From positions 4,409,404-4,473,403 of the forward strand of contig CAJFCJ010000007.1 of assembly GCA_904063045.1 (NCBI GenBank): DNA of 64,000 nucleotides. Reading direction: 5' to 3'. Below, one piece after another: positions 33,122-48,068 of the stretch (the stretch's first letter is position 1; every line of letters begins with the position of its first letter). The notes beneath the pieces are model-generated. The model saw nothing but the letters and a program-made list of their open reading frames with translations. It made no database searches and was not told where the DNA came from. Source of the DNA: Dimorphilus gyrociliatus (lineage: Eukaryota; Animalia; Annelida). The position numbers and the translations under genes were made by a program.

Positions 33122-35707
33122 TTAATAGATATCTGAAATATCGTATTTATTCTGCAATGCCCAATCTTTTAATAATTTTACAATTGTTTCAGCTTGACTA
33201 TTAGTTGAATTTTTCAATATTCTTATGATATCTTTCAACCTTGTTCTGTTTTTAAATATTCATAAAGATTATACATAAAATTATTGAGTAATTTGTAATC
33301 ATTACTTTTTCTCCATACCATATGTTATAAAACGAAAAACACCCATACAGGCTCCTCGTTTACCTTCCCAATATTCAGGACTAGGATCTAGTCTGTCAAG
33401 TATATCAAATGCCTTAGCAGAATAATAAAATTGATCTGTCTTATAACAATCGTTCGCTATCAATCTCAAAAGATTGAATGACTGAACACCAGTTTCAGCT
33501 TTTAAATACAGTTCCCAGGCTAAATAAGCCTTTCCATTCATTATATAAGATCTAGCCAAACAGGACAAATAGGTATATTCCGACCTAAAGTAATAATTTG
33601 TAATAAGAAGAAATACTTCTTCAGCCTTAGCAAACTCTCCAACAGCTGTCAAAGCTTGCGCAAAATTATAGTTAAATGTGTCATCATTATGGAAATAGTT
33701 CTATCAAAATAGAAAAGAGCATTACAATAATAAAACTTTCATGCTGGTTTTAAATTATTACTTTTATCGAATCTAAATAAATTAGGACATCGTTAAAATT
33801 CTCCAATAAGAAGTAATAAGACGCCATACACTGCCTTCCACGTATTGAGTCTAATTAATTTAAATGTTATGTAAATAGAATAATTATACAATTAAGATAA
33901 AAGATGACAACGTACCACGTTCACCTTTAGAATCTCCAACGGATTTAAAGCATTCTTTCGCAAATTCTATATATGATGACTAAAATATGAAAGGCTCTTT
34001 AGATTAATATACGTGTACATATATTGTTAATTACACAATACATTAGAAAGATTTCTTAGTAAGTATTGATTTCAAAAAGAAAGAGTTAGTGAGTGAGTGA
34101 GTGAGTGAGTGAGTGAGTGAGTGAGCGAGCGAAAGAGGAAAAGGAGATTTTAATAATTCTCAAAACACGCTTGATGATAAAACATAAAAGGAAGAGAAAC
34201 ACATATATAATATTGAAGTGATTGTCATCTAAGCGACGAATTACAAATGGGAATTACTTCTAACGTCATCATCTATTATTGAGAGAGTTACGCTGCCGAT
34301 AAAGACTCTCTACTGAAGATCAGAACTGCTGTGAATTTGTATACTCTTTAGACAACTTACGTGCATATCTCCCCTGCTCTATAGTCTGCGTTTATATATT
34401 CTAAACACAAATATACAATTGTTACGTAATTTAATGCAAAAATTATACAAACCGATCTTTCTTCCTGTCCTAAACAAGCGCAAACTGTTCCCTTTAAAAT
34501 ATACTCTTGAATTGTAGAAGGGTTAAATTCTTTTATCAATTTAAAAGCTGCTTGAAGGTCATTCTTTTGTAAATAATAAATAACCAAATTTAATCTAGCT
34601 TCTGGTATAATATTAACAAGTGGTGGAAGAAATCGAAGTATGTCTTGACCCGAGTTGAAAACAACTAAATTATGATTTAGAACATCTAAAAAGTAACTGT
34701 AAGATGACTCAGAATATTTTTCTTTATAAAATTCTAATTCAGTATGAGCACTTTCAACGTGAAATAGTCGAAAGTTGTTACAAGCTTTCAAGTTAATTGC
34801 AACGACACTGTCTGGATAACTTCGAAGATATATATTTAATATTTCCTGTTTACAAAAAGATACGGATAAGCATATATAAAGAAATCTTTTATTTAAGCCT
34901 TTACTTGCGAAATATCATAGTAATCCATCTTGTAATAGCATAATGCTATATAAACGTGTACAGCTAAGTAGTCCCTAAGGAAAACAGAGAAAAAGAATAG
35001 ATTAAAAATTAAGGGTCAATATTGTATAGTATAAAGTAGCGTTAACTAATATATAAAGTATATACACTAAACATCTTTTACATTTATCCAATATAAAGCT
35101 AAAAAGGAAATGTTACTTATGCTCAAATAAAACTCTCTTGTAAATATCAATAGCTTCTTCGTAATGCGAACGTAAATAATGCATTGAAGCCAACGATAAT
35201 TGATCTTCTGTGATATCCTGTAATCTTTGATGATAGACTATTATCTTTTCTTCATCGTCGAACTTTTGCGAAAGGTGAAAGAGCAAACGATTTTTTAAAG
35301 GTGTTTTCGGCCCTTTCTCAATAAATTCCCTCGACTCTTCGTACATTCCCAACATAAAATATGTACATGCCAACCAGATATAGATTTCTGGGTTAGGTCC
35401 ATCATCTTTAAGCGCCTTATGATAAAAGTTCACAGCCTTTTTAAAATCACTCAAATGGAATGCACAATATGCTATCCAAATGCTACGGTCATACAGACTT
35501 ATTTCTGCCGTATTATGCACCTCTAAAAGAGTTATGGCGCCCATAAAATCTCTTTTCTGTATGAATTCTGAGAATGTAGGAAGTTCCTTTCCTTTATCTT
35601 TTCTTTTACATTCTTGAAAGTTTCTTTCAATGGACGGTTTCTTTCTGGAAAGTAACTTTAGATAAGAGCGAATTAGTAACGATCTTTTAAGTATTTAAAC
35701 TAACCAT
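33122..35707 (-). CDS. IFT56: Intraflagellar transport protein 56 (TTC26), TPR protein
   Basis: ATG-only first exon, then LLSRKKP...[97 protein letters not shown], ending [17 protein letters not shown]. Confidence 0.93.
34090..34125. repeat. (TGAG)n microsatellite in IFT56 intron
   Basis: About 9 units; essentially absent at the homologous pseudogene position (~43380). Confidence 0.9.
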
Positions 35708-36259
35708 TTTGTAGACATTTAATACTAAAAAGTATTAAAACTAACGATAAAAAGTAATTATCAATATCGTTCTTAATAACAATAATCAGCGATCGTCTGC
35801 AAAGTGAAATAATTGTTTTCGTATTTTGAAAAGTTAACTTTTTCAAAAGGAAATATCTAAATGATGTGAAAAGATCAATAATTAGACCCATTCTACTTTA
35901 CTTATATAGATTATTTACTTAAATAGTAAATATTCTATTTTTGTATCAAAACATTATTATCTAATTAATATAATATATTAAAGCATATGTACTAAACCGG
36001 ATGCACTTTTCGCTGATTCATGAAAGAGAAAACTGCACATTTACTTACATATTCAATTGATTAAATAGAATTTATTACAAAATTATCATTTAAATTATAC
36101 TTTACGTATTAGCTAGCAGCATATATATATATATTTAGTACATACACTGCAGATTAATAGAAAAGTACTTAATGCGCAAATGAAGGTATCTTGCATTGAT
36201 AGCTGAAACAAATACAAAGTCAAATAAACAGAACAAAAACAAACAAAAGTTGTTTTGTA

Positions 36260-39200
36260 TCAAAATTTGCTTCTCTTTAAGATCGAAAGTACTAGTAAAG
36301 CAACACAAGCTGAACCTATCCTTAAAGGGCATATAAAAGCAGCTATAATTCCGTATGCTTTTCCAAATCCGGTCCACGCTAAATATATCTGCCACCATAC
36401 AATCAGCAAAATGAATACATAACTTTTCCATTTTACTTGTTTCTTTAATGTAAAGACCGCCCATAGTGTTAATGGGGTATTAAACGTCCATAATTGAAAC
36501 AAACCAAAGAATGGTAAGGTTGGAAGCGATATGACACCATGAGAATAAGTAAACGCGCCGTAAAAGCAAACGACACCCCAATGATTTTCAATCAGTTGAC
36601 CAACAAACCAAGGTCCTAAATATATATATAAGGACCAACCAATTAGAACATAGCACAATGTAGCATCAGCTGATAGAATGGACAGTCTCCTAATCCAACT
36701 ATGATCAAAATGAAGCATAATGTTACGTTTTATCGTTTGATGACGCAACATCAGCAGGGGAACAATGAGAAATAACTCAGTAAAAAAGAACAACCATCTA
36801 GCGACTAGTCTATGATCAGCCATAAGGATAAACCTGGCTCTGAAGGGAAAAGGTAATCTCGAATTGTCCAATGAGAAAGGCTGTTCGTGTTTAGAGATAC
36901 GACCTCCACACTGTTTGAAGACAAAAAAAAAATTATATTATGTTTTAATAAAAAAAATTGAATATATAATTTTCTACCTTAACATTTACGCTTATTTTAT
37001 GTATACCAGTTTTGAATTGTTTAGGATCCCAAGGTATTGTATACAATGGACTTGTATTGGTTTTTTTAGCATTGCCTAATTTAAAGCCATCGACAGATAC
37101 AACAACTTGATCGACAGGTACAGGAGAAAATATTAATATTCTGTAAAAAAAAAGAACAAAAGAGAAAGGAATAACAAATTCGTTGGCAGACTGGATAAGA
37201 AAATCGCAATTTAATTTAAATTGATATAAAACCTTATGTGAGTAGAATGTAAAATCTTCTCCGTTGGTTCATACTTCGGTGAATTAAATTGACTATGTTT
37301 CGGATTCGTAATTAATACTAGTGGGAACTCATCGAATAAAGTTTTATCAACAAATGAAAAGAGGCCATTATCAACAGCGAAAATTCGATATGCTCTATTA
37401 TCTTTCCAATCTGCTAATTCTAATTCCATATTACCGTCTATATGACTAGTATACATTTGCGGTAAAAAACCAAGTAGGTTATGCAGATGACCGCATAAAT
37501 AAAAGCCAGCTTTCCTAAGGGATAAAATATTTAATGTAATGAACCACTATATATATATATATATATATAATGTATATATAAAGTATGTATAAAACTAACG
37601 AAATTAGAGATTTCATTTCATGTTTCTTACCAACAACCGTTGATGAAGGAAAATGTCCAAAAAACACAATTGCATCTTTTCTCTTTTCAGCCTCTTTTAT
37701 AAATTTGTCAACTAATTTATAATTTTTCTCATCTAATTGACCAAAGAAGTTAAAAGGTCTCTTCAACCCAATAGTCAGGGCAACATCCAAAGCAATAAGG
37801 GTAACGTTTCCTTGCCTATGGTAGTAGGATTGTAATTTATTCCCTCTAAGTGAATAATTCTTATAATAATTCGTAGAGCTCTTATCTCCACCAACGTTAA
37901 ACGTGTCTAAAGGGAAACATAAAAATAAGAAACGGTTGTAATATTTTCAATAAACATAATCTGTAAAAGATATTTATTTAACTGAATCTTACTTCAGTTA
38001 ACATTAGACATCACTAGGAAAATAAGAACGGCTGTTTACAGTTCATTACTCATTCTGCATCTATCATCCTATTCTAGTTTTTATGTTTTCTACAATAAAT
38101 AATGTTTGTATTGTTATTTCATAAGCTATAAAAAATACATATAAAATATATGTAGTATTGGATAATCAGGATTATATTAATTAGTTATATTAGATTACCG
38201 ACGAATTTTCACTACAAAACATATATTTTATAACAATAGGTTAAGTTTAATTTGTCGAAAGTTAATAATAATTAATAGTATTATAGGCTTAAGGTATTTA
38301 TAGTATCATATATAAAATAGCTTTGTTCTAACTTTTAAAATTATTTTTTAATCAACAAATTGTGTGTATCTGTTAAAAAAAAAGAGAAAAAAACATGAAC
38401 ATCTGTTCTACACTAACATTTTAAAAACATGGAGACATTGACCAAAAATCATTTTAAAGAATTCCGATACAACTTTGACGTATAAAAATAATACTTGAAT
38501 TACATCAGGTGATAAAAAAATCGGATGATCCCTACTCTTTGCTTCCTTCCTTATCAATTCTAGTATATGTAATTCAATCTCTATCTCTATAGCTCTAGAT
38601 ATTTTTAAAGAGTTTCCTCTTTTCACTACTTTCTATATAAATTTGTGTTACTGTTGACCTTTGCTATTTATTTTTTATTATTATAGGTATAAATAAAAAA
38701 CAATGTATTATGTGTAAAATAATTAAGTCTTCAAATACAGGGTACTGTTTGTTTTCGTAATATATACTGTATACATTCATAACAATAGAAAAATAATAAT
38801 AATTAAAAGCTGTTTAATTGTTCAATTTACATGAATTTATCAAATTTAATAGAAAACTAACCATGATTGCCTCGAATATCCAACGTTGTTGTTTTTTTAG
38901 AACAGTAATTTTTAACAATTTTTGTATAGGTCTGCCACTCATCGAGATATTGTTCGGATCCCATATGATCGTCGTGTTTTGCATCAGTTAAATCTCCTAG
39001 AAAATAGTAATTTTCATTTAATATCTATGCTTATAAATCTTAAATTAAATTGTATTTTGTTAAAAAAGAACCTGTAATAATCAGAGTTTGAGGTTGTATA
39101 AAGTCCAAATACTTTGTGCAAAACATTTGCAAGTCGTTTATTCTTTTTTTATCATAAAATCGGCTTATATGTATGTCCGAGAGCTAGAATTAAAGAATAT

Positions 39201-39718
39201 CTATTTAATTAATTAGAAGCTTTAGATTTTTGCGTGAATTTACTATTCTTTTTCAATTATTCGAACGGATACAACAAGCACAATATACATTTTTATGATC
39301 TTTATATAGACACATGTACGAGCTATAAATACTGTAATAACACTTATATATAGGTTTTAAGAGGCAATTTTGAGATACATCATCAGAACATGTAGTGTAT
39401 ATTATAATCAAGAAATATTTAATATTATTTCAGTTTGTCATTGAAAAATAAAAATAGCCTTTAACTAACTTGAACAAACCATTGCAAGCCCTCGGTCGAA
39501 CTATCAAGTAACGGTGGTTTATTTCCATGAAATTTAGCTTGGTGAATCCTTTCACTTGCATCATTCAAGTGCTCCAGAGTATTTGAAGCTAAGTAAATAA
39601 ATAAACTTAACAAAACTGTGAAAATTGCAAAGCTGATACAATTTTTCATTGTTAAGAAAGCAGGTATTTTTTTAGAATCCGAGTTTTTCACATAAGCCAT
39701 ACTAATGGAATAAACCAT
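36260..39718 (-). CDS. TMEM62: TMEM62 (calcineurin-like metallophosphoesterase domain plus C-terminal TM helices)
   Basis: LSDIHISRF, GDLTDAK...EWQTY...LDIRGNHD, GLKRPFNFFG, FFGHFP, YLCGHLH, ELELADWKDNRAYRIFAVDNGLFSF, and a hydrophobic C-terminal exon 36260-36871. Start codon may be 39718 or a downstream ATG. Confidence 0.88.
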
Positions 39719-40019
39719 CTATCTCCATGGTCCGCCTCTCTTGTATCAATTTGTAATTATGTTGTAATATAAGTTTTCGTCAAAACTTATTATTTGGCAA
39801 TAAGATTTCGTCGTCTGCTGTTAGAGGCTGGTTACCAGTCCAATAAACATTTTACGAAAATAAATTTTTTCTATATCAAATTTATTAATTAATAAATTTT
39901 GAGTAATTTGCTTAAATTTAATAAAAAAAGGATTTTAGTAATATTACGAAAAAAATTTAATAAATCAGACAATCATTAGTTTTAAAGCGGGACAGTTTCA
40001 TTTTCAACTGTGGTAAATC
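39719..40019. promoter_or_regulatory. Bidirectional promoter between TMEM62 and CARM1 copy 1
   Basis: About 300 bp between divergent ATGs; a recognisable duplicate is retained upstream of CARM1 copy 2. Confidence 0.55.
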
Positions 40020-42819
40020 ATGGCACATGAAAACAAGAAGATCTACGAAGGCGTTCTCTTCTCCACTTTAGAAGAAAAAGATTCAATATCTCCATCTTCG
40101 CCTGTGACTGTTAATATACACTTGCAGGAGAGTTCGACTGGTTTTAAAGTGCTTGCTAAAAATGGTTAATTTATTACAAATTTATCAAAAAAAAAAAACG
40201 TGACCAATTTTTTTAAAACTGTTAATTAATTTTCTTTTTCTTAGAAGGTGCTTATGTAATAAGAGCTTTATCACATATTATACAATTAGCGACTTATTAA
40301 ATAGTAAATTTAAGAAAAGAAAATGCAGCGAATGGTAATTGACTCATATTTAGCACAAACCACGTGCGATTTGAAAAATGTTAACTACTGGTCGTTGTAC
40401 CGGTGTATGCTACGTTATTAATTGAATTAAGATATAATTACATTAAAACTAATATAACGAACGTTTTTAACGTATGGAAGAATATATTGATAATTTTCAA
40501 AAAATTGTCTAAGTTCTCCAGTTAAATGGAGCATAAAAAACACTCCCAAACCACGGTGATTCTTCCTAGCTTGCAATGATAGATTGCCCTAACTTTATCA
40601 AAAAGTTAAAATGTTGAACCTTATTTGCTATAAAAGAGATATAAGATTCAAATCATTGGCAGACTATAAAAAATGTGTATTTTTTGTAAAGGGAATGAAT
40701 CAGACTACAAATGTCTTATAATCTTTAATAGATGTTTTGAAAATAATTTCAGGCACTGGAGAGCCAGCAGAAATTGGGTTTGTCGACAAAACCACAGAAA
40801 TATGCAAAGTTGGCAAAAATACGGCTGTTGTAACGTTCGAAGAGAAAAGTATAAGCCTGAAGTTTCAAGCTGAAAATGGTTAGTATTGATAAACTTTAAG
40901 AGAATCTATCAACAGGCTCTGAAAGTAGTGCTCACTGTAATAAATAGGTGTCAAAATCTCCGTAGCTGTTAGTTTAGTAAAGAGCCACCAGGCGGAAACG
41001 TTAAATTTTAAAGGCTAAAATTTATCAGGCATATCAAGACAAGCATACCCACTTTACTTGCTATTCAAATTCAGTTTAGAAGCCTAATGCCAGACTTGGC
41101 AAGATATTATTCTATGAAATGTTAATTAGTTGTTTAAGCTACTTATTAGTAACACAACCGTGAGTCAATCATGTATTTTTAGCTGAGTGAGTGTGGAAGT
41201 CACAATGAATATTTTTAACAGTAATTATTTCTTTATTTTATAATAAAAGTAACTTTCTTGACATTTTTTTTTATAAATTATGTAGCGAATAATTTAATTG
41301 CTCATCGATTAAATTTGAAACGGGTTAGGTGAATAAAAAATAGCTAATTGATTCGGACATTCTAAAGTTAGAATGTCATTCCTTGTGAAATTGTCTACGA
41401 TTTTAATTTAATGTATGATACATGTATTATATTGGTTACACTTTTAATATCTCAACAGATTTTATATCGTTTTATGACAATGCGAAACGAGCTATTTCTC
41501 AGAAAACTAATTCGGTGTTCAAACTTCGAACTGAAGAAACTTCTGCGAAGCAATATTTTCAGTTTTACGGATACTTAGAGCGACAACAAAATATGTTGCA
41601 AGATTTTATACGAACAAGTACCTATCAAAAGGCAATGCTAAATAGTAATGAAGATTTTATGGGAAAGGTTGTTTTGGATGTAGGAGCAGGATCTGGAATT
41701 TTATCATTTTTTGCAGTACAAGCTGGTGCTAGGAAAGTTTATGCCGTCGAGGCATCGTCTATGGCCCAACATTGTAGAGAATTGGTTAAAAATAATAACC
41801 AGAGCGATAAAATAACTGTTCTCTCTGGAAAGATAGAAGAAATAGAATTACCAGAAAGTGTTGATATTATTATCTCGGAGCCTATGGGCTACATGTTGTT
41901 TAACGAACGTATGTTGGAATCTTTCTTGCACGCGAAGAAATGGTTAAAGAGCGGAGGACGAATGTTTCCAACAATAGCAAATTTGCACATAGTACCCTTT
42001 ATGGATGATGCTCTCTACTCTGAGCAATTCAGAAGGGCTAACTTTTGGTGTCAGACAAGCTTTCACGGAGTGAATCTGTCGAGTTTGCAGCAAGCAGCAT
42101 TGTCAGAATATTTTTGTCAACCCGTAGTTGACACATTCGATCCGAGAATTTGCTTAGGTAAACCCTTCAAACACATTCTTAATTTTGAGAAGGCAGAAGA
42201 AGAGGATTTACATCATATTGATGTTCCTGTTTCTTTTACGATAAACCAATCTGGAACATGTCATGGTTTAGCCTTTTGGTTCGATGTGGCCTTTTCTGGA
42301 AGTAAGGCAGAGCAAGAAGGTCCTGTTTGGCTATCGACTGCTCCATCGGAACCACTAACACATTGGTATCAGGTCAGATGCTTGATTCCTCAACCAATAT
42401 TGCTGAAAAGTGGAGACTCAATGACAGGAAGAGTTATTTTATCAGCTAATAAGAGACAAAGCTATGACGTTGATTTGGAGTTAGTGGCTCCAAATGGTGC
42501 AATGGTGGTTACCAACAAGCTGGACTTAAAGAACCCATATTTTAGGCACACTATACAAGGTGTTGCCCTGCCAGCTCATACAAGCAAAATAAGTCCTACT
42601 GATCAATACTTTTCAAACCAAAGTTCTTCTGCAGAACAAAATGTTTTATGCGACAATGTTCCAGGACAACCACCTAAGGGAACTGATGTTTTGGAAATGA
42701 CGAGCTCGGTTCCTATGAATCCTGCATATAACCCTGCAGCGGCGGCGATGAGTAGTGTTCACCAACCTCAGCCTATAAACTCTCTGTTTAACTTCCCAGT
42801 ATTCCGTGCTAGGATCTAG
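40020..42819 (+). CDS. CARM1: CARM1/PRMT4 paralogue 1, 3 exons, chimeric truncated C-terminus
   Basis: Exon 1 [11 protein letters not shown] (40020), exon 2 near 40753-40878, exon 3 41459-42819. Motifs [53 protein letters not shown]. The last ~11 codons align to antisense IFT56. Confidence 0.9.
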
Positions 42820-44037
42820 TCTGTTAAGTATGTCAAATGCCTTAGCAGAATAGTAATGTTGATCTGTCTTTTATCATTCATTTGATCTCAATTTAAAGAG
42901 ATGAAAGACTAAAGAGCAGTTTCAACTTTCAAATACAGTTTGTAGTCTAGATTTGCGTTTCTATTTATTATTTAATATGTAGCCAAACAGGACAAATAGG
43001 TATATTCCGATCTGCGTTAGTAATTTGTTATTAGAAGAAATACTTCTTCAGCCTTAGCAAACTCTTCAAAAGTTATAAAAGTCATTGTTAATATTATCCG
43101 ATAAGAAGTAATAAGACACCATATACTGCCTTCCACGTATTGAGTCTAATTAATTTAAATGCCATATAAATAGAATAATTATACAATTAATAATAAAAGA
43201 TGACAACGTACCACGTTCACCTTTAGAATCTCCAACGGATTTAAAGCATTCGTTCGCAAATTCTATGTATGATGACTAAAATATGAAAGGCTCTTTAGAT
43301 TAATATACATGTACATATATTGTTAATTACACAATACATTAGAAAGATTTCTTATTAAGTATTGATTTCAAAAAGAAAGAGTGAGCGAGCGAAAGAGGAA
43401 AAGGAGATTTTAATAATTCTCAAAACACGCTTGATGATAAAACATAAAAGGAAGAGAAACACATATATAATATTGAAGTGATTGTCATCTAAGCGATGAA
43501 TTAGAAATGTAAATTATTTCTAACGGTATTATCTATTATGAAGATAGCTACGCTGCCTATAAAAACGCTACTGAAGATTATAACTGTTGTGGATTTGTAT
43601 ATTGCTTAGACAATTTACGTGTATATCTCTCCTGCTCTAAAGTCTGTAAATGTATATTCTAACTACAAATAATCAATTGCTACAATTATTAAAAGTTCAT
43701 AACCTTCTTACAATCGCTCAAATGCTCAATAAGCTATCCAAATTCTACGGTCATACAGACTTATTTTGGCTATAATATGCTCTTCTAAAACAGTTATGGC
43801 ACCCATAAAAATCTCTTTTCTGTATGAATTTTGATAATGTAGGAAGTTCCTATCATTTATCTTGTCTTTTACATTCTTGAAAGTAACTTTACATAAGAGT
43901 GAATTAGCTATGATCTTTTAAGTATTTAAATTAACCATTTCGTAGATGTGTTATACTAAAAAATATTAAAACTAAGGAAAAAAAGTAATTATCAATATTT
44001 TTCTTAATAACAATAATAAGTAACCATCTGCAAAGTT
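42786..44037 (-). pseudogene. IFT56: IFT56 pseudogene remnant
   Basis: Fragments homologous to IFT56 exons and introns (e.g. agccaaacaggacaaataggtatattccga; cgtaccacgttcacctttagaatctccaacgg; gttatggcacccataaaa), with large internal deletions, frameshifts and no final exon. Confidence 0.88.
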
Positions 44038-44065
44038 AAATTTTAAAGTTATCTAAGTAAATAAA

Positions 44066-44140
44066 AAAGCTTAACAAACTGTGAAAAGTGCAAAGATGAT
44101 ACAGTTTTTCATATAAGCCATACTATTAGAATAATTCCGC
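44066..44140 (-). pseudogene. TMEM62: TMEM62 exon 1 remnant
   Basis: ttaacaaactgtgaaaagtgcaaagatgatacagtttttcatataagccatact matches 39608-39705 with a 42-bp deletion; the rest of the gene is absent. Confidence 0.75.
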
Positions 44141-44426
44141 TATTTACATTCCCCGTTTCTTTTTTTTCCATTTGTATTTATGTTGTAATATAAGTTTCGT
44201 CAAAACTTATTATATGATTTTGTCGTCTGCTGTTAGAGGCTTGTTACCAGTCTATTAAACTTTTTACGAAGATAACTCTTCTCTATATCCAATTTATTAT
44301 TTTTTTTGGTGCATTGATTAAATAAGAATAAAAAACGTATGGATTTCAGTGAGGAAAAATGTATAAATTAAATCAGACAAATACCAGTTTTTAAGCGGGA
44401 CAGTCTCATTTTCAAGTGCGATAAAA

Positions 44427-47400
44427 ATGGCGACTAAAGACAAGAAGCTCTATGAAGGCGTTTTGTTGACCAGTTTAGAAGAAAGAGAATCAGTATCTGC
44501 ATCCTTGCCTGTCGCAGTTAATATACTGTTACAGGAAAGTTCGACTGGCTTTAGAGTGTTTGCTAAAAATGGTTAGTTTATTAGAAATTTATCAAAAAAT
44601 AAAAACGTTTTTGGTGAAAGTAAACGCATGACCGGTTTTTTTAAAACTATTCATAAATTTTCTTTTCCTAGAATATGATTGAGTAATGATATCTTTACTA
44701 TCTTTTTTTATAATAAGAGACTTATTAAATGGAAAATTTAAAAAAAAAATAGACTCGTCCTAAAAGAAAATGAAGCGAATGATAATTGACTCTTGGTTTA
44801 AGCACAACACACATAGTGTTTGAATAAACGTTGACTGCTGGTCGTTGTACCGACGTATTCAGCGTTTTTAATTCGATTCAGATGCAATCACACTCAATCT
44901 GACATGTCAAACATTTTTAGCGAATGGAAGAATATATTGAAAATTTCTGAAAGTTCTTTAATTCGAAATTCTGTGTATTTTAATAATACAGAGCTGAGCT
45001 TTGGAAATACAGAGTCCCAGAGATATTAATTAATTGAGTTCTTGAGCAAAATTGAGCATACAAAAAAAACTCAGTTCTTCAAATATAAATTAGTGGTAGA
45101 TATAATATTTATTATACTTGTGATTAATTGAATTAACAATCAGATTCATAAAATATTCTTAAAATATCAAGTTATTGAAGCCACGATAATTCTCTTCCAA
45201 ACGTGAAATAATAGATTGCTCTAACTTTATCATCAGGTCCAAATGTTGAACCTTATTTGCTATAAAAGAGATATAAAGACTCAAATCATTTACAGAGACT
45301 AATAAAAATGTGTTTTTTTGTAAAGGGAATGAATCAATCAACAAATGTCTAATTTTTTAATAGATCCTTCGAAAATTATTTCAGGTACTGGAGATCCAGC
45401 AGAAATTGGGTTTATCGACAAAACCACAGAAATATGCAAAATTGGCAAAAATTCGGCAGTTGTAAGTTTTGAAGAGAAAGGCATAAGCCTGAAGTTTCAA
45501 GCTGAAAATGGTTAGTATTGATAAACTTTAAGAGAATCTATCAACAGGCTCTGAAAGTAGTGCACTTTGTAATAAAGAGGTATCAAAATCTCCGTAGCTG
45601 TTAGTTTAGTAAAGAGCCACCAGGCGGAAACGTTAAATTTTAAAGGCTAAAATTTATCAGGCATATCAAGACAAGCATACCCACTTTACTTGCTATTCAA
45701 ATTCAGTTTAGAAGCCTAATGCCAGACTTGGCAAGATATTATTCTATGAAATGTTAGTTAGTTATTTGAGCTACTTATTAGTAAAACAACCGTGAGTCAA
45801 TCATGTATTTTTAGCTGAGTGAGTGTGGAAGTCACAATGAATATTTTTAACAGTAATTATTTCTTTATTTTATAATAAAAGTAACTTTCTTAACATTTTT
45901 TTTTTATAAATTATGTAGCGAATAATTTAATTGCTCATCGATTAAATTTGAAACGGGTTAGGTGAATAAAAAATAGCTAATTGATTCGGACATTCTAAAG
46001 TTAGAATGTCATTCCTTGTGAAATTGTCTACGATTTTAATTTAATGTATGATACATGTATTATATTGGTTACACTTTTAATATCTCAACAGATTTAATAT
46101 CGTTTTATGACAATGTGAAACGAGCTATTTCTCAGAAAACTAATTCGGTGTTCAAACTTCGAACTGAAGAAACTTCTGCGAGCCAATATTTTCAGTTTTA
46201 CGGATACTTAGCACAACAACAAAATATGATGCAAGATTTTATACGAACAAGTACCTATCAAAAGGCAATGCTAAATAGTAATGAAGATTTTATGGGAAAG
46301 GTTGTTTTGGATGTAGGAGCAGGATCTGGAATTTTATCATTTTTTGCAGTACAAGCTGGTGCTAGGAAAGTTTATGCCGTCGAGGCATCGTCTATGGCCC
46401 AACATTGTAGAGAATTGGTTAAAAATAATAACCAGAGCGATAAAATAACTGTTCTCTCTGGAAAGATAGAAGAAATAGAATTACCAGAAAGTGTTGATAT
46501 TATTATCTCGGAGCCTATGGGCTACATGTTGTTTAACGAACGTATGTTGGAAACATTCTTGCACGCGAAGAAATGGTTAAAGAGCGGAGGACGAATGTTT
46601 CCATCGGAAGCACATTTGCACATAGCGCCTTTTATGGATGATGCTCTCTACTCTGAGCAATTTAGCAAGGCTAACTTTTGGTGTCAGACAAGCTTTCACG
46701 GAGTAAATCTGTCGAGTTTGCAGCAAGCAGCATTGTCAGAATATTTTTGTCAACCCATAGTTGACACATTCGATCCGAGAATTTGCCTAGCTAAGTCCTT
46801 CAAACACACTGTTAATTTTGGGAATACAGAAGAAGAGGATTTACATCATATTGATATTCCTGTTTCTTTTACGATAAACCAATCTGGAACATGTCATGGT
46901 TTAGCCTTTTGGTTCGATGTGGCCTTTTCTGGAAGTAAGGCAGAGCAAGAAGGTCCTGTTTGGCTATCGACTGCTCCATCGGAACCACTAACACATTGGT
47001 ATCAGGTCAGATGCTTGATTCCTCAACCAATATTTCTGAAAAGTGGAGATTCATTGGCAGGAAGAGTTATTTTATCAGCTAATAAGAGACAAAGCTATGA
47101 CGTTGATTTGGAGTTAATGGCTCCAAATGGTGCAATGGTGGCTAGCAACACTCTGGACTTGAAGAACCCATATTTTAGGTACACTGGCCAAGCTGTTGCC
47201 GCTCCACCTCATACAACCAATACAAGTCCTACCGAACAATACTGGACAACCCAGAATTCTTCTGCAGAACAGCAGATTTTATGTAACCTTATCCCAGCAC
47301 CACCACCGGATGGAAATGCTGTTTCGGAAATAACGAGTTCTGTTCCTATCAATCCTGGATCTATACCAGCGGCGGCGATAAGCATTGGTCGCCAACCCCT

Positions 47401-47509
47401 GCCTCAACCTATGAACTCACCAGCGTTTACAGTTTCGAACCAGTTTATGATAGCAGATTATGTTCTTCCTCAAAAGTCCTGTCACAATTCGTTTGTGAAG
47501 CATCTGTAA
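44427..47509 (+). CDS. CARM1: CARM1/PRMT4 paralogue 2, 3 exons, ancestral-type C-terminus
   Basis: Exon 1 [11 protein letters not shown] (44427), exon 2 near 45385-45510, exon 3 46092-47509. Canonical [18 protein letters not shown], and C-terminal FTVSNQFMI resembling the recalled CARM1 tail YAVNSQFTM. Confidence 0.93.
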
Positions 47510-48068
47510 TAAGCACGTCTCAGTTGTTGTTTTCTGTTTTCTTTTAAAATATGACTCGATTAGGTTTGGAGCGCTTCATATTGAAGATTTTTTTTTTTTG
47601 ATACTCCACGTATACTGTTCTCGAAAGTTCATCTTTAAGAAGATATCAGTCGTGTGTGTATGAGGCAGTGCAGTTCTGTAAGTTGCATTTTGAAAAGTAA
47701 TAAAAAGATTTGTGAGGGTTATTTTATATAAAGCATTATTTGTAAATATAACCAAAGAAACCTAAGTAAGTTTATATATCCGTTAATCGATTATCCATAT
47801 CACCTCTAAAAGCCAAGATATAAAATGAGTTCTTTTGTATTAAAATACATTTACAAATTTGCAACGCAGTTTAAATACGTCGGACATTTATTTGTTTGGT
47901 CTTTCAATTAGTAGCAATCGTTATGAATTTCAACAAGCATAATTAAAAGAATCGTTCATATGAGAGAAACTAAAGAATTAGTTAGTTCAAAACTGAAAAA
48001 AGAACGTTTAAGGCATTTTAAAGTTAACATAATCAATTTGTACTATACAGTATACAAGTAATTATTAA

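Follow-up and report, generated by a model that had tools for sequence, protein, structure and literature searches.

A tandem pair of CARM1/PRMT4 genes in Dimorphilus gyrociliatus with a patchily converted centre and a fast-evolving upstream copy

This study concerns 64,000 nucleotides (nt) of DNA from the annelid Dimorphilus gyrociliatus (assembly GCA_904063045.1, contig CAJFCJ010000007.1, positions 4,409,404 to 4,473,403 of the forward strand), called the window below, whose base composition is that of AT-rich animal DNA. All coordinates refer to the window. Two intact CARM1/PRMT4 genes lie here in tandem, head to tail on the plus strand, with three exons each in the open reading frame (ORF) model. 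Copy 1 (40020-42819) encodes a protein of 543 amino acids (aa) and copy 2 (44427-47509) one of 562, and both frames are open. An earlier reading, made from the sequence alone and referred to below as the sequence-only reading, had recognised two CARM1 paralogues and proposed that gene conversion homogenises their cofactor-binding core while selection preserves divergent residues in the substrate pocket of copy 1. We find the pair and the conversion, but a different distribution of the converted DNA and little that speaks for selection on the pocket.

The gene models were compared with assembled transcripts. Thirteen sequencing runs are listed, 10 of them with at least part of the stretch, and contigs of four were compared with 39500-43500. 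Runs X1 and X2 belong to one 2020 study and are labelled 'DNA?'; their contigs are spliced, which identifies them as RNA. X3 stems from a 2017 study under another species label, and X6 is a coral metatranscriptome of 2024. Exon 1 of copy 1 (40020-40164) begins with the start codon at 40020, transcript contigs start at 40006, and its joint to exon 2 (40164/40753, GT..AG) is found in X1, X2 and X6. Exon 2 (40753-40878), both joints of which occur in RNA contigs, would encode the second half of a putative N-terminal EVH1/PH-like domain. These two exons were missing from the interval that the sequence-only reading had assigned to the pair (41459-47509). Exon 3 (41459-42819) supplies the catalytic core, a CARM1-type C-terminal extension with the replacement Y477H (mouse numbering), and a novel C-terminus with the stop codon; the 3' untranslated region extends to about 42949, and contigs spanning 41458-42483 and 42454-42949 have 0 differences. 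For copy 2, exon 1 (44427-44571, 80.7% identical to its counterpart) and exon 2 (45385-45510) are taken from the ORF model, and contigs with the seven copy-2 letters at 40809-40848, the matching part of copy 1 exon 2, are present in X2 and X3. Copy 2 exon 3 (46092-47509) encodes a conservative catalytic core and keeps the C-terminal VSNQFMI-DYV motif.

That both genes belong to CARM1/PRMT4 is clear from homology searches, which were run exon by exon, with exons joined only for local codon counting. In phmmer searches of solved structures, rat CARM1 (3b3j) is the best match of copy 1 (E=1.7e-150, 505 bits) and of copy 2 (E=1.4e-160, 538 bits), while the next-best family in the copy 2 search, PRMT6, reaches only ~1e-56 and about 194 bits. 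The copies do not differ in the S-adenosylmethionine (SAM) motif I (VLDVGxGxG), the double-E loop (E258/E267) or the THW loop, all of which they possess and all of which lie inside identical tracts; the catalytic glutamate pair and THW are intact, as the sequence-only reading had stated. Of the residues P473, F475 and Y477 in the C-terminal extension that borders the peptide groove, copy 2 retains all three, while copy 1 has P, F and H477, followed by I479. The exon 2 peptide of copy 2, searched alone, aligns with residues 54-85 of Owenia CARM1 (E=5e-6); exon 1 alone gave no Pfam hit for either copy and no alignment to the Owenia CARM1 N-terminus. In a phylogenetic tree, annelid CARM1s enclose both copies, which are sisters with 100% support.

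Both genes are transcribed and spliced. A 1310-nt contig from the X1/X2 study joins exons 1, 2 and 3 of copy 1 as far as 42483 with 0 differences, and the contigs of this study place the joints exactly at 40164/40753 and 40878/41459 (GT..AG). The copy-1-specific 3' end (42454-42949) is present in X1, X2 and X3, in the first two without differences, so copy 1 is not silent. X3 contains two versions of 42094-42253 at similar depths, one with 0 and the other with 11 other letters, the 11 being exactly those of copy 2, and its intron 2 contig also bears copy-2 letters. X6 contains a spliced junction of copy 1 exons 1 and 2. Contig depths of copy 1 are comparable to or above those of copy 2.

Some further observations concern transcripts and annotation. 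X1 yielded only copy-1-type contigs (4/4, all at least 99% alike), while X2, X3 and X6 contain both; a stage-dependent difference in expression is a possible reason, bearing in mind that contigs cannot show absence. In X2, a minor joint of low depth (20) at 40877-40947 removes 69 nt (GT..AG) from the beginning of intron 2 and may represent an alternative splice or an intermediate. The public models of both genes are truncated at the 5' end and do not include the N-terminal domain exons, whereas the three-exon model is backed by RNA contigs. The copy 2 model, DgyrCDS6770, whose protein is 100% identical to our exon 3 translation, begins at a tiny 'MNIFN' exon within intron 2 (45836-45852; copy 1 counterpart 41204-41220), and the copy 1 model begins at an internal methionine of the QQNML motif. 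The N-terminal domain exons should be added to both.

The divergence between the copies is far from uniform. The duplicated units differ by about 14-22% in the upstream DNA, exon 1, intron 1, the 3' tail and a co-duplicated IFT56-like fragment described below, the values being 20.8% upstream, 19.3% in exon 1, 20.0% in intron 1 (with 12 indel events) and 21.9% in the 3' tail. Between these lies a sharp-edged block of 1.66 kb (40851-42508 in copy 1, 45483-47141 in copy 2), comprising intron 2 and most of exon 3, where the difference is 3.0% as against the baseline of ~20%, with silent and intron sites included in the drop. In intron 2, 10 substitutions in 580 aligned sites and a single 1-nt indel separate the copies (98.3% identity, compared to 80% for intron 1), which agrees with the earlier observation of a near-identical intron 2 behind a diverged exon 1 and intron 1. 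The identical stretch of about 320 bp that had been noticed in the SAM-binding core is a perfect run of 323 nt (41597-41919 = 46230-46552) over the Rossmann/SAM-binding core and the double-E loop. A second perfect run, of 178 nt (42224-42401 = 46857-47034), includes the THW loop. The low-divergence block thus spans intron 2, the Rossmann fold, the beta-barrel and the THW loop, and is not the cofactor core in particular.

Permutation supports this heterogeneity. For the whole unit, the longest identical run and the variance/mean ratio in 50-nt bins both have P<5e-5; for intron 2 and the exon 3 core alone, the longest run has P=0.00075 and the over-dispersion P<5e-5. Synonymous divergence (dS) follows the same course: it is 0.38 in exon 1 and 0.19 in exon 2, drops to 0.037 for aa 92-137 and to 0 for aa 138-244, rises to 0.148 for aa 245-346, is 0 again for aa 347-404 and 0.043 for aa 405-440, and returns to 0.30 in the tail.

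There is good support for interlocus gene conversion in this pair, because the contrast of 3% versus ~20% extends over intron and silent sites, because the co-duplicated IFT56-like DNA, at 79-86% identity, provides an internal baseline that shows the older divergence, and because independent contigs reproduce the pattern and a strain-specific change is found in both paralogues. This change comes from X6, whose transcripts belong to a diverged relative; over 42454-42862 they show ten substitutions and a 6-nt deletion that keeps the frame. At 42103, each of the two island versions in X6 reads G (depth 25.7 of 25.7), where T stands in the two reference copies; the presence of the same strain-specific change in both paralogues is a signature of concerted evolution. 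Repeated non-reciprocal recombination has overwritten the central 1.66 kb, which extend from intron 2 as far as the THW region, patch by patch and at different times, and has left perfect runs beside older islands. Purifying selection was considered as a cause of the identical tracts and rejected, since it is powerless on intron 2 and on silent sites, and unequal crossing-over was rejected because it does not homogenise an internal block of a two-copy array. A scan of 39500-47700 against Rfam gave no match at an E of 0.1 or less, so that no Rfam family accounts for the identity of intron 2.

It might be argued that the identical tracts are an artefact of assembly or polishing, or the collapse of two more divergent copies, as near-identical repeats can be homogenised by short-read polishing and the source sample may be among the runs. 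The independent data make this extremely improbable. In X3 and X6, of 2017 and 2024, the identical runs are covered by single contigs, while two versions exist for the islands; X3 agrees with the assembly letter for letter, and in X6 each of the three islands occurs in both versions. Every run gives the same tract boundaries, and copy-2 letters occur in the intron 2 contig of X3. Contigs of three studies thus reproduce both the runs and the island versions. As a side observation, the X6 transcripts, from a Dimorphilus-like worm, are ~97-99% identical to the locus (40019-42862), both CARM1 paralogues included, and this lineage could serve as a close outgroup.

Inside the converted block, the remaining differences are concentrated in islands. 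A micro-island at 41549-41596 has 6 differences in 48 nt, all replacements, namely K121S, E131A, R132Q (mouse Q159) and L137M (mouse M164), with the letter of copy 1 given first; both versions are present in X6. The main island, 41920-42223, has 25 differences in 304 nt, and both its versions are found in X3 and X6. The sequence-only reading had taken the differences to cluster as amino-acid changes close to the substrate pocket. All amino-acid pairs that it listed are present as written, and the clustering is real; the restriction to amino acids is not, as the core as a whole has 10 silent changes next to 28 replacements, the silent ones within the same islands, aa 245-346 has 8 silent changes next to 17 replacements, and the ten substitutions in intron 2 likewise fall in three tight clusters (variance/mean 2.69, P=0.0015). 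Because silent and intron differences are clustered like the replacements, the pattern is a patchwork of conversion events of different ages and not a set of amino-acid islands as such. The islands resemble patches that are older or escaped conversion more than they resemble residues under selection, and the most likely reason for their persistence is that conversion tracts are short and patchy.

Selection against the conversion of islands is also possible. In its full form, this idea holds that conversion homogenises the cofactor core while selection removes those conversions that would erase pocket residues of copy 1, which would have acquired a new specificity. Several findings agree with it: replacements at or next to the groove of residues that are invariant in 25 outgroups (Q159R and Y477H), accompanied by G479I and M164L; the retention of both island versions in the diverged strain X6; a divergence of the exon 3 core that exceeds that of the adjacent intron (P=0.03); the six of six replacements in the micro-island; and the expression and maintained ORF of copy 1. 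However, the silent changes in the same islands occur in proportion, with a ratio of nonsynonymous to synonymous divergence (omega) of 0.49 in the main island, like the 0.45 of the unconverted exons 1-2. The intron differences are clustered in the same way, six replacements out of six are not significant (P about 0.2 under neutrality), omega is significantly above 1 in no test, and most derived changes (A296V, K310R, A351G, S353P, T357I, V358L, I373V and L435M) are away from the pocket. We regard this model as a whole as rather unlikely.

The two copies do not evolve alike. We polarised the core sites with alignment A1, which contains 25 outgroup CARM1s from protostomes and hemichordates. Copy 1 has the derived state at 15 of the polarisable sites and copy 2 at 2. 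Copy 1 replaces three residues that are invariant in all 25 outgroups (Q159R, K310R and Y477H in mouse numbering) and alters several near-invariant ones (M164L, A296V, A351G, I373V, L435M, G479I and P486A). Tajima relative-rate counts are 13-21 versus 1-7, with P<0.05 for 23 of the 25 outgroups, and in the tree the copy 1 branch measures 0.26 and the copy 2 branch 0.00, on a long shared stem of 0.92. Copy 2 has thus remained near the animal consensus, and copy 1 takes nearly all replacements. Three further positions, S158, D292 and S464 of the mouse protein, are invariant or nearly so in 25 other animals, yet both copies depart there from the consensus and from each other (E/A, N/H and V/A); the codons in copy 1 are 41578-41580, 41980-41982 and 42508-42510.

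The asymmetry raises the question of whether copy 1 is a redundant duplicate in decay, with its core repaired by conversion from copy 2 and its replacements due to neutral drift. The omega of 0.73 for the pair over the core is compatible with a simple relaxation of constraint on copy 1, and an equal split of the silent changes would give roughly 1.3 on the copy 1 branch. Copy 1 has also lost a conserved C-terminal motif and is substituted at invariant residues. The between-strain changes listed for it are 12 replacements and 5 silent changes, so the constraint on its N-terminus and tail is weak. Yet the unconverted coding DNA has only two indel events (3 and 6 nt) in 556 nt, with no frameshift or stop, where about 10 events are expected from the neighbouring unconverted non-coding DNA (18 events in 968 nt). 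The diverged strain's deletion preserves the reading frame, all catalytic motifs of copy 1 are intact, and spliced transcripts of copy 1 occur in three independent studies, at contig depths comparable to or higher than those of copy 2. Because of the scarcity of coding indels, the in-frame deletion in X6 and the expression in three studies, copy 1 is probably not decaying, and we consider the decay scenario distinctly unlikely. We infer that copy 1 is probably active as a methyltransferase, its constraint being relaxed or shifted.

Where the two enzymes might differ can be narrowed down with the help of published work on the CARM1 peptide groove, from which we took the groove residues. Y477, F475, P473, Y262 and F153 make up the site that takes peptide positions -1 to -4 (PMC9469100), F475, P473 and Y262 are also placed in the peptide site by another study (PMC9293414), and Q159 and N162 are located at the arginine pocket by docking (PMC5107250). 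Y477H of copy 1 falls in the wall formed by P473, F475 and Y477, and Q159R and M164L fall in the N-terminal helix. The idea that differences lie at the pocket is correct in so far as these three are at or beside the groove, and Y477H and Q159R are plausible specificity changes; most of the 15 changes derived in copy 1, however, are in the beta-barrel and the dimerisation arm. The largest differences between the paralogues lie elsewhere again, in regions on which the sequence-only reading had not focused: the EVH1-like N-terminus, which the conversion block does not reach and in which the copies share 76% identity, and the C-terminal tail, which is 56% identical and truncated in copy 1. The EVH1 domain is necessary for substrate recognition by human CARM1 (PMC5458078). 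Should the two enzymes have different targets, the N-terminus and tail would be no less likely than the pocket to be responsible.

A difference in catalysis between the copies appears unlikely. A functional difference of copy 1, if present, would most likely lie in substrate recognition, through the EVH1-like N-terminus and the groove with Y477H and Q159R, and in the lost C-terminal motif. One may go further and propose that copy 1 is neofunctionalised, with the altered groove (Y477H, Q159R, G479I), the N-terminus and the lost motif giving it a distinct set of substrates, with selection against conversion keeping the patches apart, and with the catalytic machinery shared by conversion; we think this unlikely. 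Irrespective of the answer, the pair amounts to a natural experiment in which the catalytic machinery is the same, the differences being in the N-terminus with its putative recognition domain, in two or three groove residues and in the C-terminal tail. Swaps of parts between the two enzymes could reveal which parts set the substrate choice of CARM1.

The DNA between the genes gives an indication of how the pair arose. The 1.25-kb spacer between the CARM1 copies is a degenerate, internally deleted copy of 33358-35810, a segment that holds the 3' part of a minus-strand tetratricopeptide repeat (TPR) gene consistent with IFT56 and contains the source TPR ORFs. The degenerate copy (42786-44041, minus strand) matches the original in three blocks (blastn, 79-86% identity), has no ORF longer than 41 aa left, and marks the duplication junction, while the left edge of the original, 33358, is the left breakpoint of the tandem duplication. 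Since the spacer copies 33358-35810, the tandem unit is ~33358-42785, or about 9.4 kb. The second unit has since lost the homologues of 34425-35423 and 35810-39590. The right breakpoint falls within the last CARM1 exon, and the antisense strand of the IFT56-like fragment provides copy 1 with about 11 final codons and its stop. This position of the breakpoint is the reason why copy 1 does not have the VSNQFMIGDYV-type C-terminal motif, which, according to a motif check, is retained by copy 2 and most protostome CARM1s. We suggest that the segment of about 9.4 kb was duplicated in tandem within the Dimorphilus lineage, that the upstream copy 1 retained the original promoter side and copy 2 the original 3' end, and that the second unit afterwards lost most of its content other than CARM1. 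In addition, a relic of exon 1 of the TMEM62-like neighbour, of about 50 nt, is found near 44050-44110.

Taken as a whole, tandem duplication followed by patchy conversion, with both copies expressed and a fast-evolving but probably active copy 1, appears to us a quite probable account of the locus. Some points weigh against it. Only 42103 is a robust case of a site shared by the paralogues in the diverged strain; 41647 and 42312 are consistent with sharing, but are represented by single contigs and possibly bubble-popped. The transcript data are assembled contigs and not raw reads, which means that they cannot phase across the 323-nt run, may pop single-base bubbles, and show presence only, with no reliable expression levels. 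A word-index protein search found no outgroup between 84% and 61% identity, and for want of an outgroup closer than about 61%, the direction and timing of conversion and the branch-specific omega values are not properly estimable. Finally, divergence is higher in the exon 3 core than in intron 2 (3.6% versus 1.7%, Fisher P=0.03), the reverse of the usual pattern, and this leaves some room for selection that favours divergence of the exon.

In its architecture, the pair resembles mammalian CARM1 and Drosophila CARMER (Art4), with the same order of putative EVH1/PH-like N-terminus, Rossmann SAM fold, double-E loop, beta-barrel with THW, and KNP-F-R-Y-TG extension. Copy 2 keeps Q159, M164, K310, Y477, G479 and the C-terminal MI-DYV motif. 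The locus differs from the known CARM1/PRMT4 genes in having two tandem copies, in the changes Q159R, M164L, A296V, K310R, Y477H and G479I and the missing C-terminal motif of copy 1, and in the departure of both copies at S158, D292 and S464, with the stem branch of 0.92. The statement that CARM1 is usually single-copy is only roughly true. The leech Helobdella robusta has two CARM1 proteins among the search matches (P0094 and P0098), and Arabidopsis has PRMT4a and PRMT4b (PRMT4.2 structure 3r0q); these are independent CARM1 duplications. Among annelids, a duplication of CARM1 is therefore not unique to Dimorphilus, and the mutual relation of the two Helobdella proteins was left unsettled by a quick tree.

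Partial interlocus conversion in tandem paralogues is familiar from the primate red and green opsins, from globin pairs and from RHD/RHCE. The CARM1 pair shares with these the sharp-edged near-identity that includes introns and silent sites, the patchwork of ages, and the diverged ends outside the tract. There is no difference in kind; what is new is the gene family in which D. gyrociliatus shows such behaviour, and one partner evolves much faster than the other. The conversion between the duplicates is real but fairly ordinary, the phenomenon itself being well known.

The closest comparison is with other methyltransferases of the same species. According to the main text of a survey of D. gyrociliatus PRMTs, only prmt1/8 and prmt6 (prmt6-a to -d) are expanded, and prmt4 is among the unexpanded genes (PMC12153100). 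These expansions resemble the CARM1 pair in that they occur in the same species, the same enzyme family and a very compact genome, with some copies having altered key residues (PMC12153100). They differ in that the PRMT6 copies are likely dead, whereas the CARM1 pair keeps all catalytic residues. The prmt4 pair seems unreported, and it adds an expansion to the published D. gyrociliatus PRMT inventory (PMC12153100).

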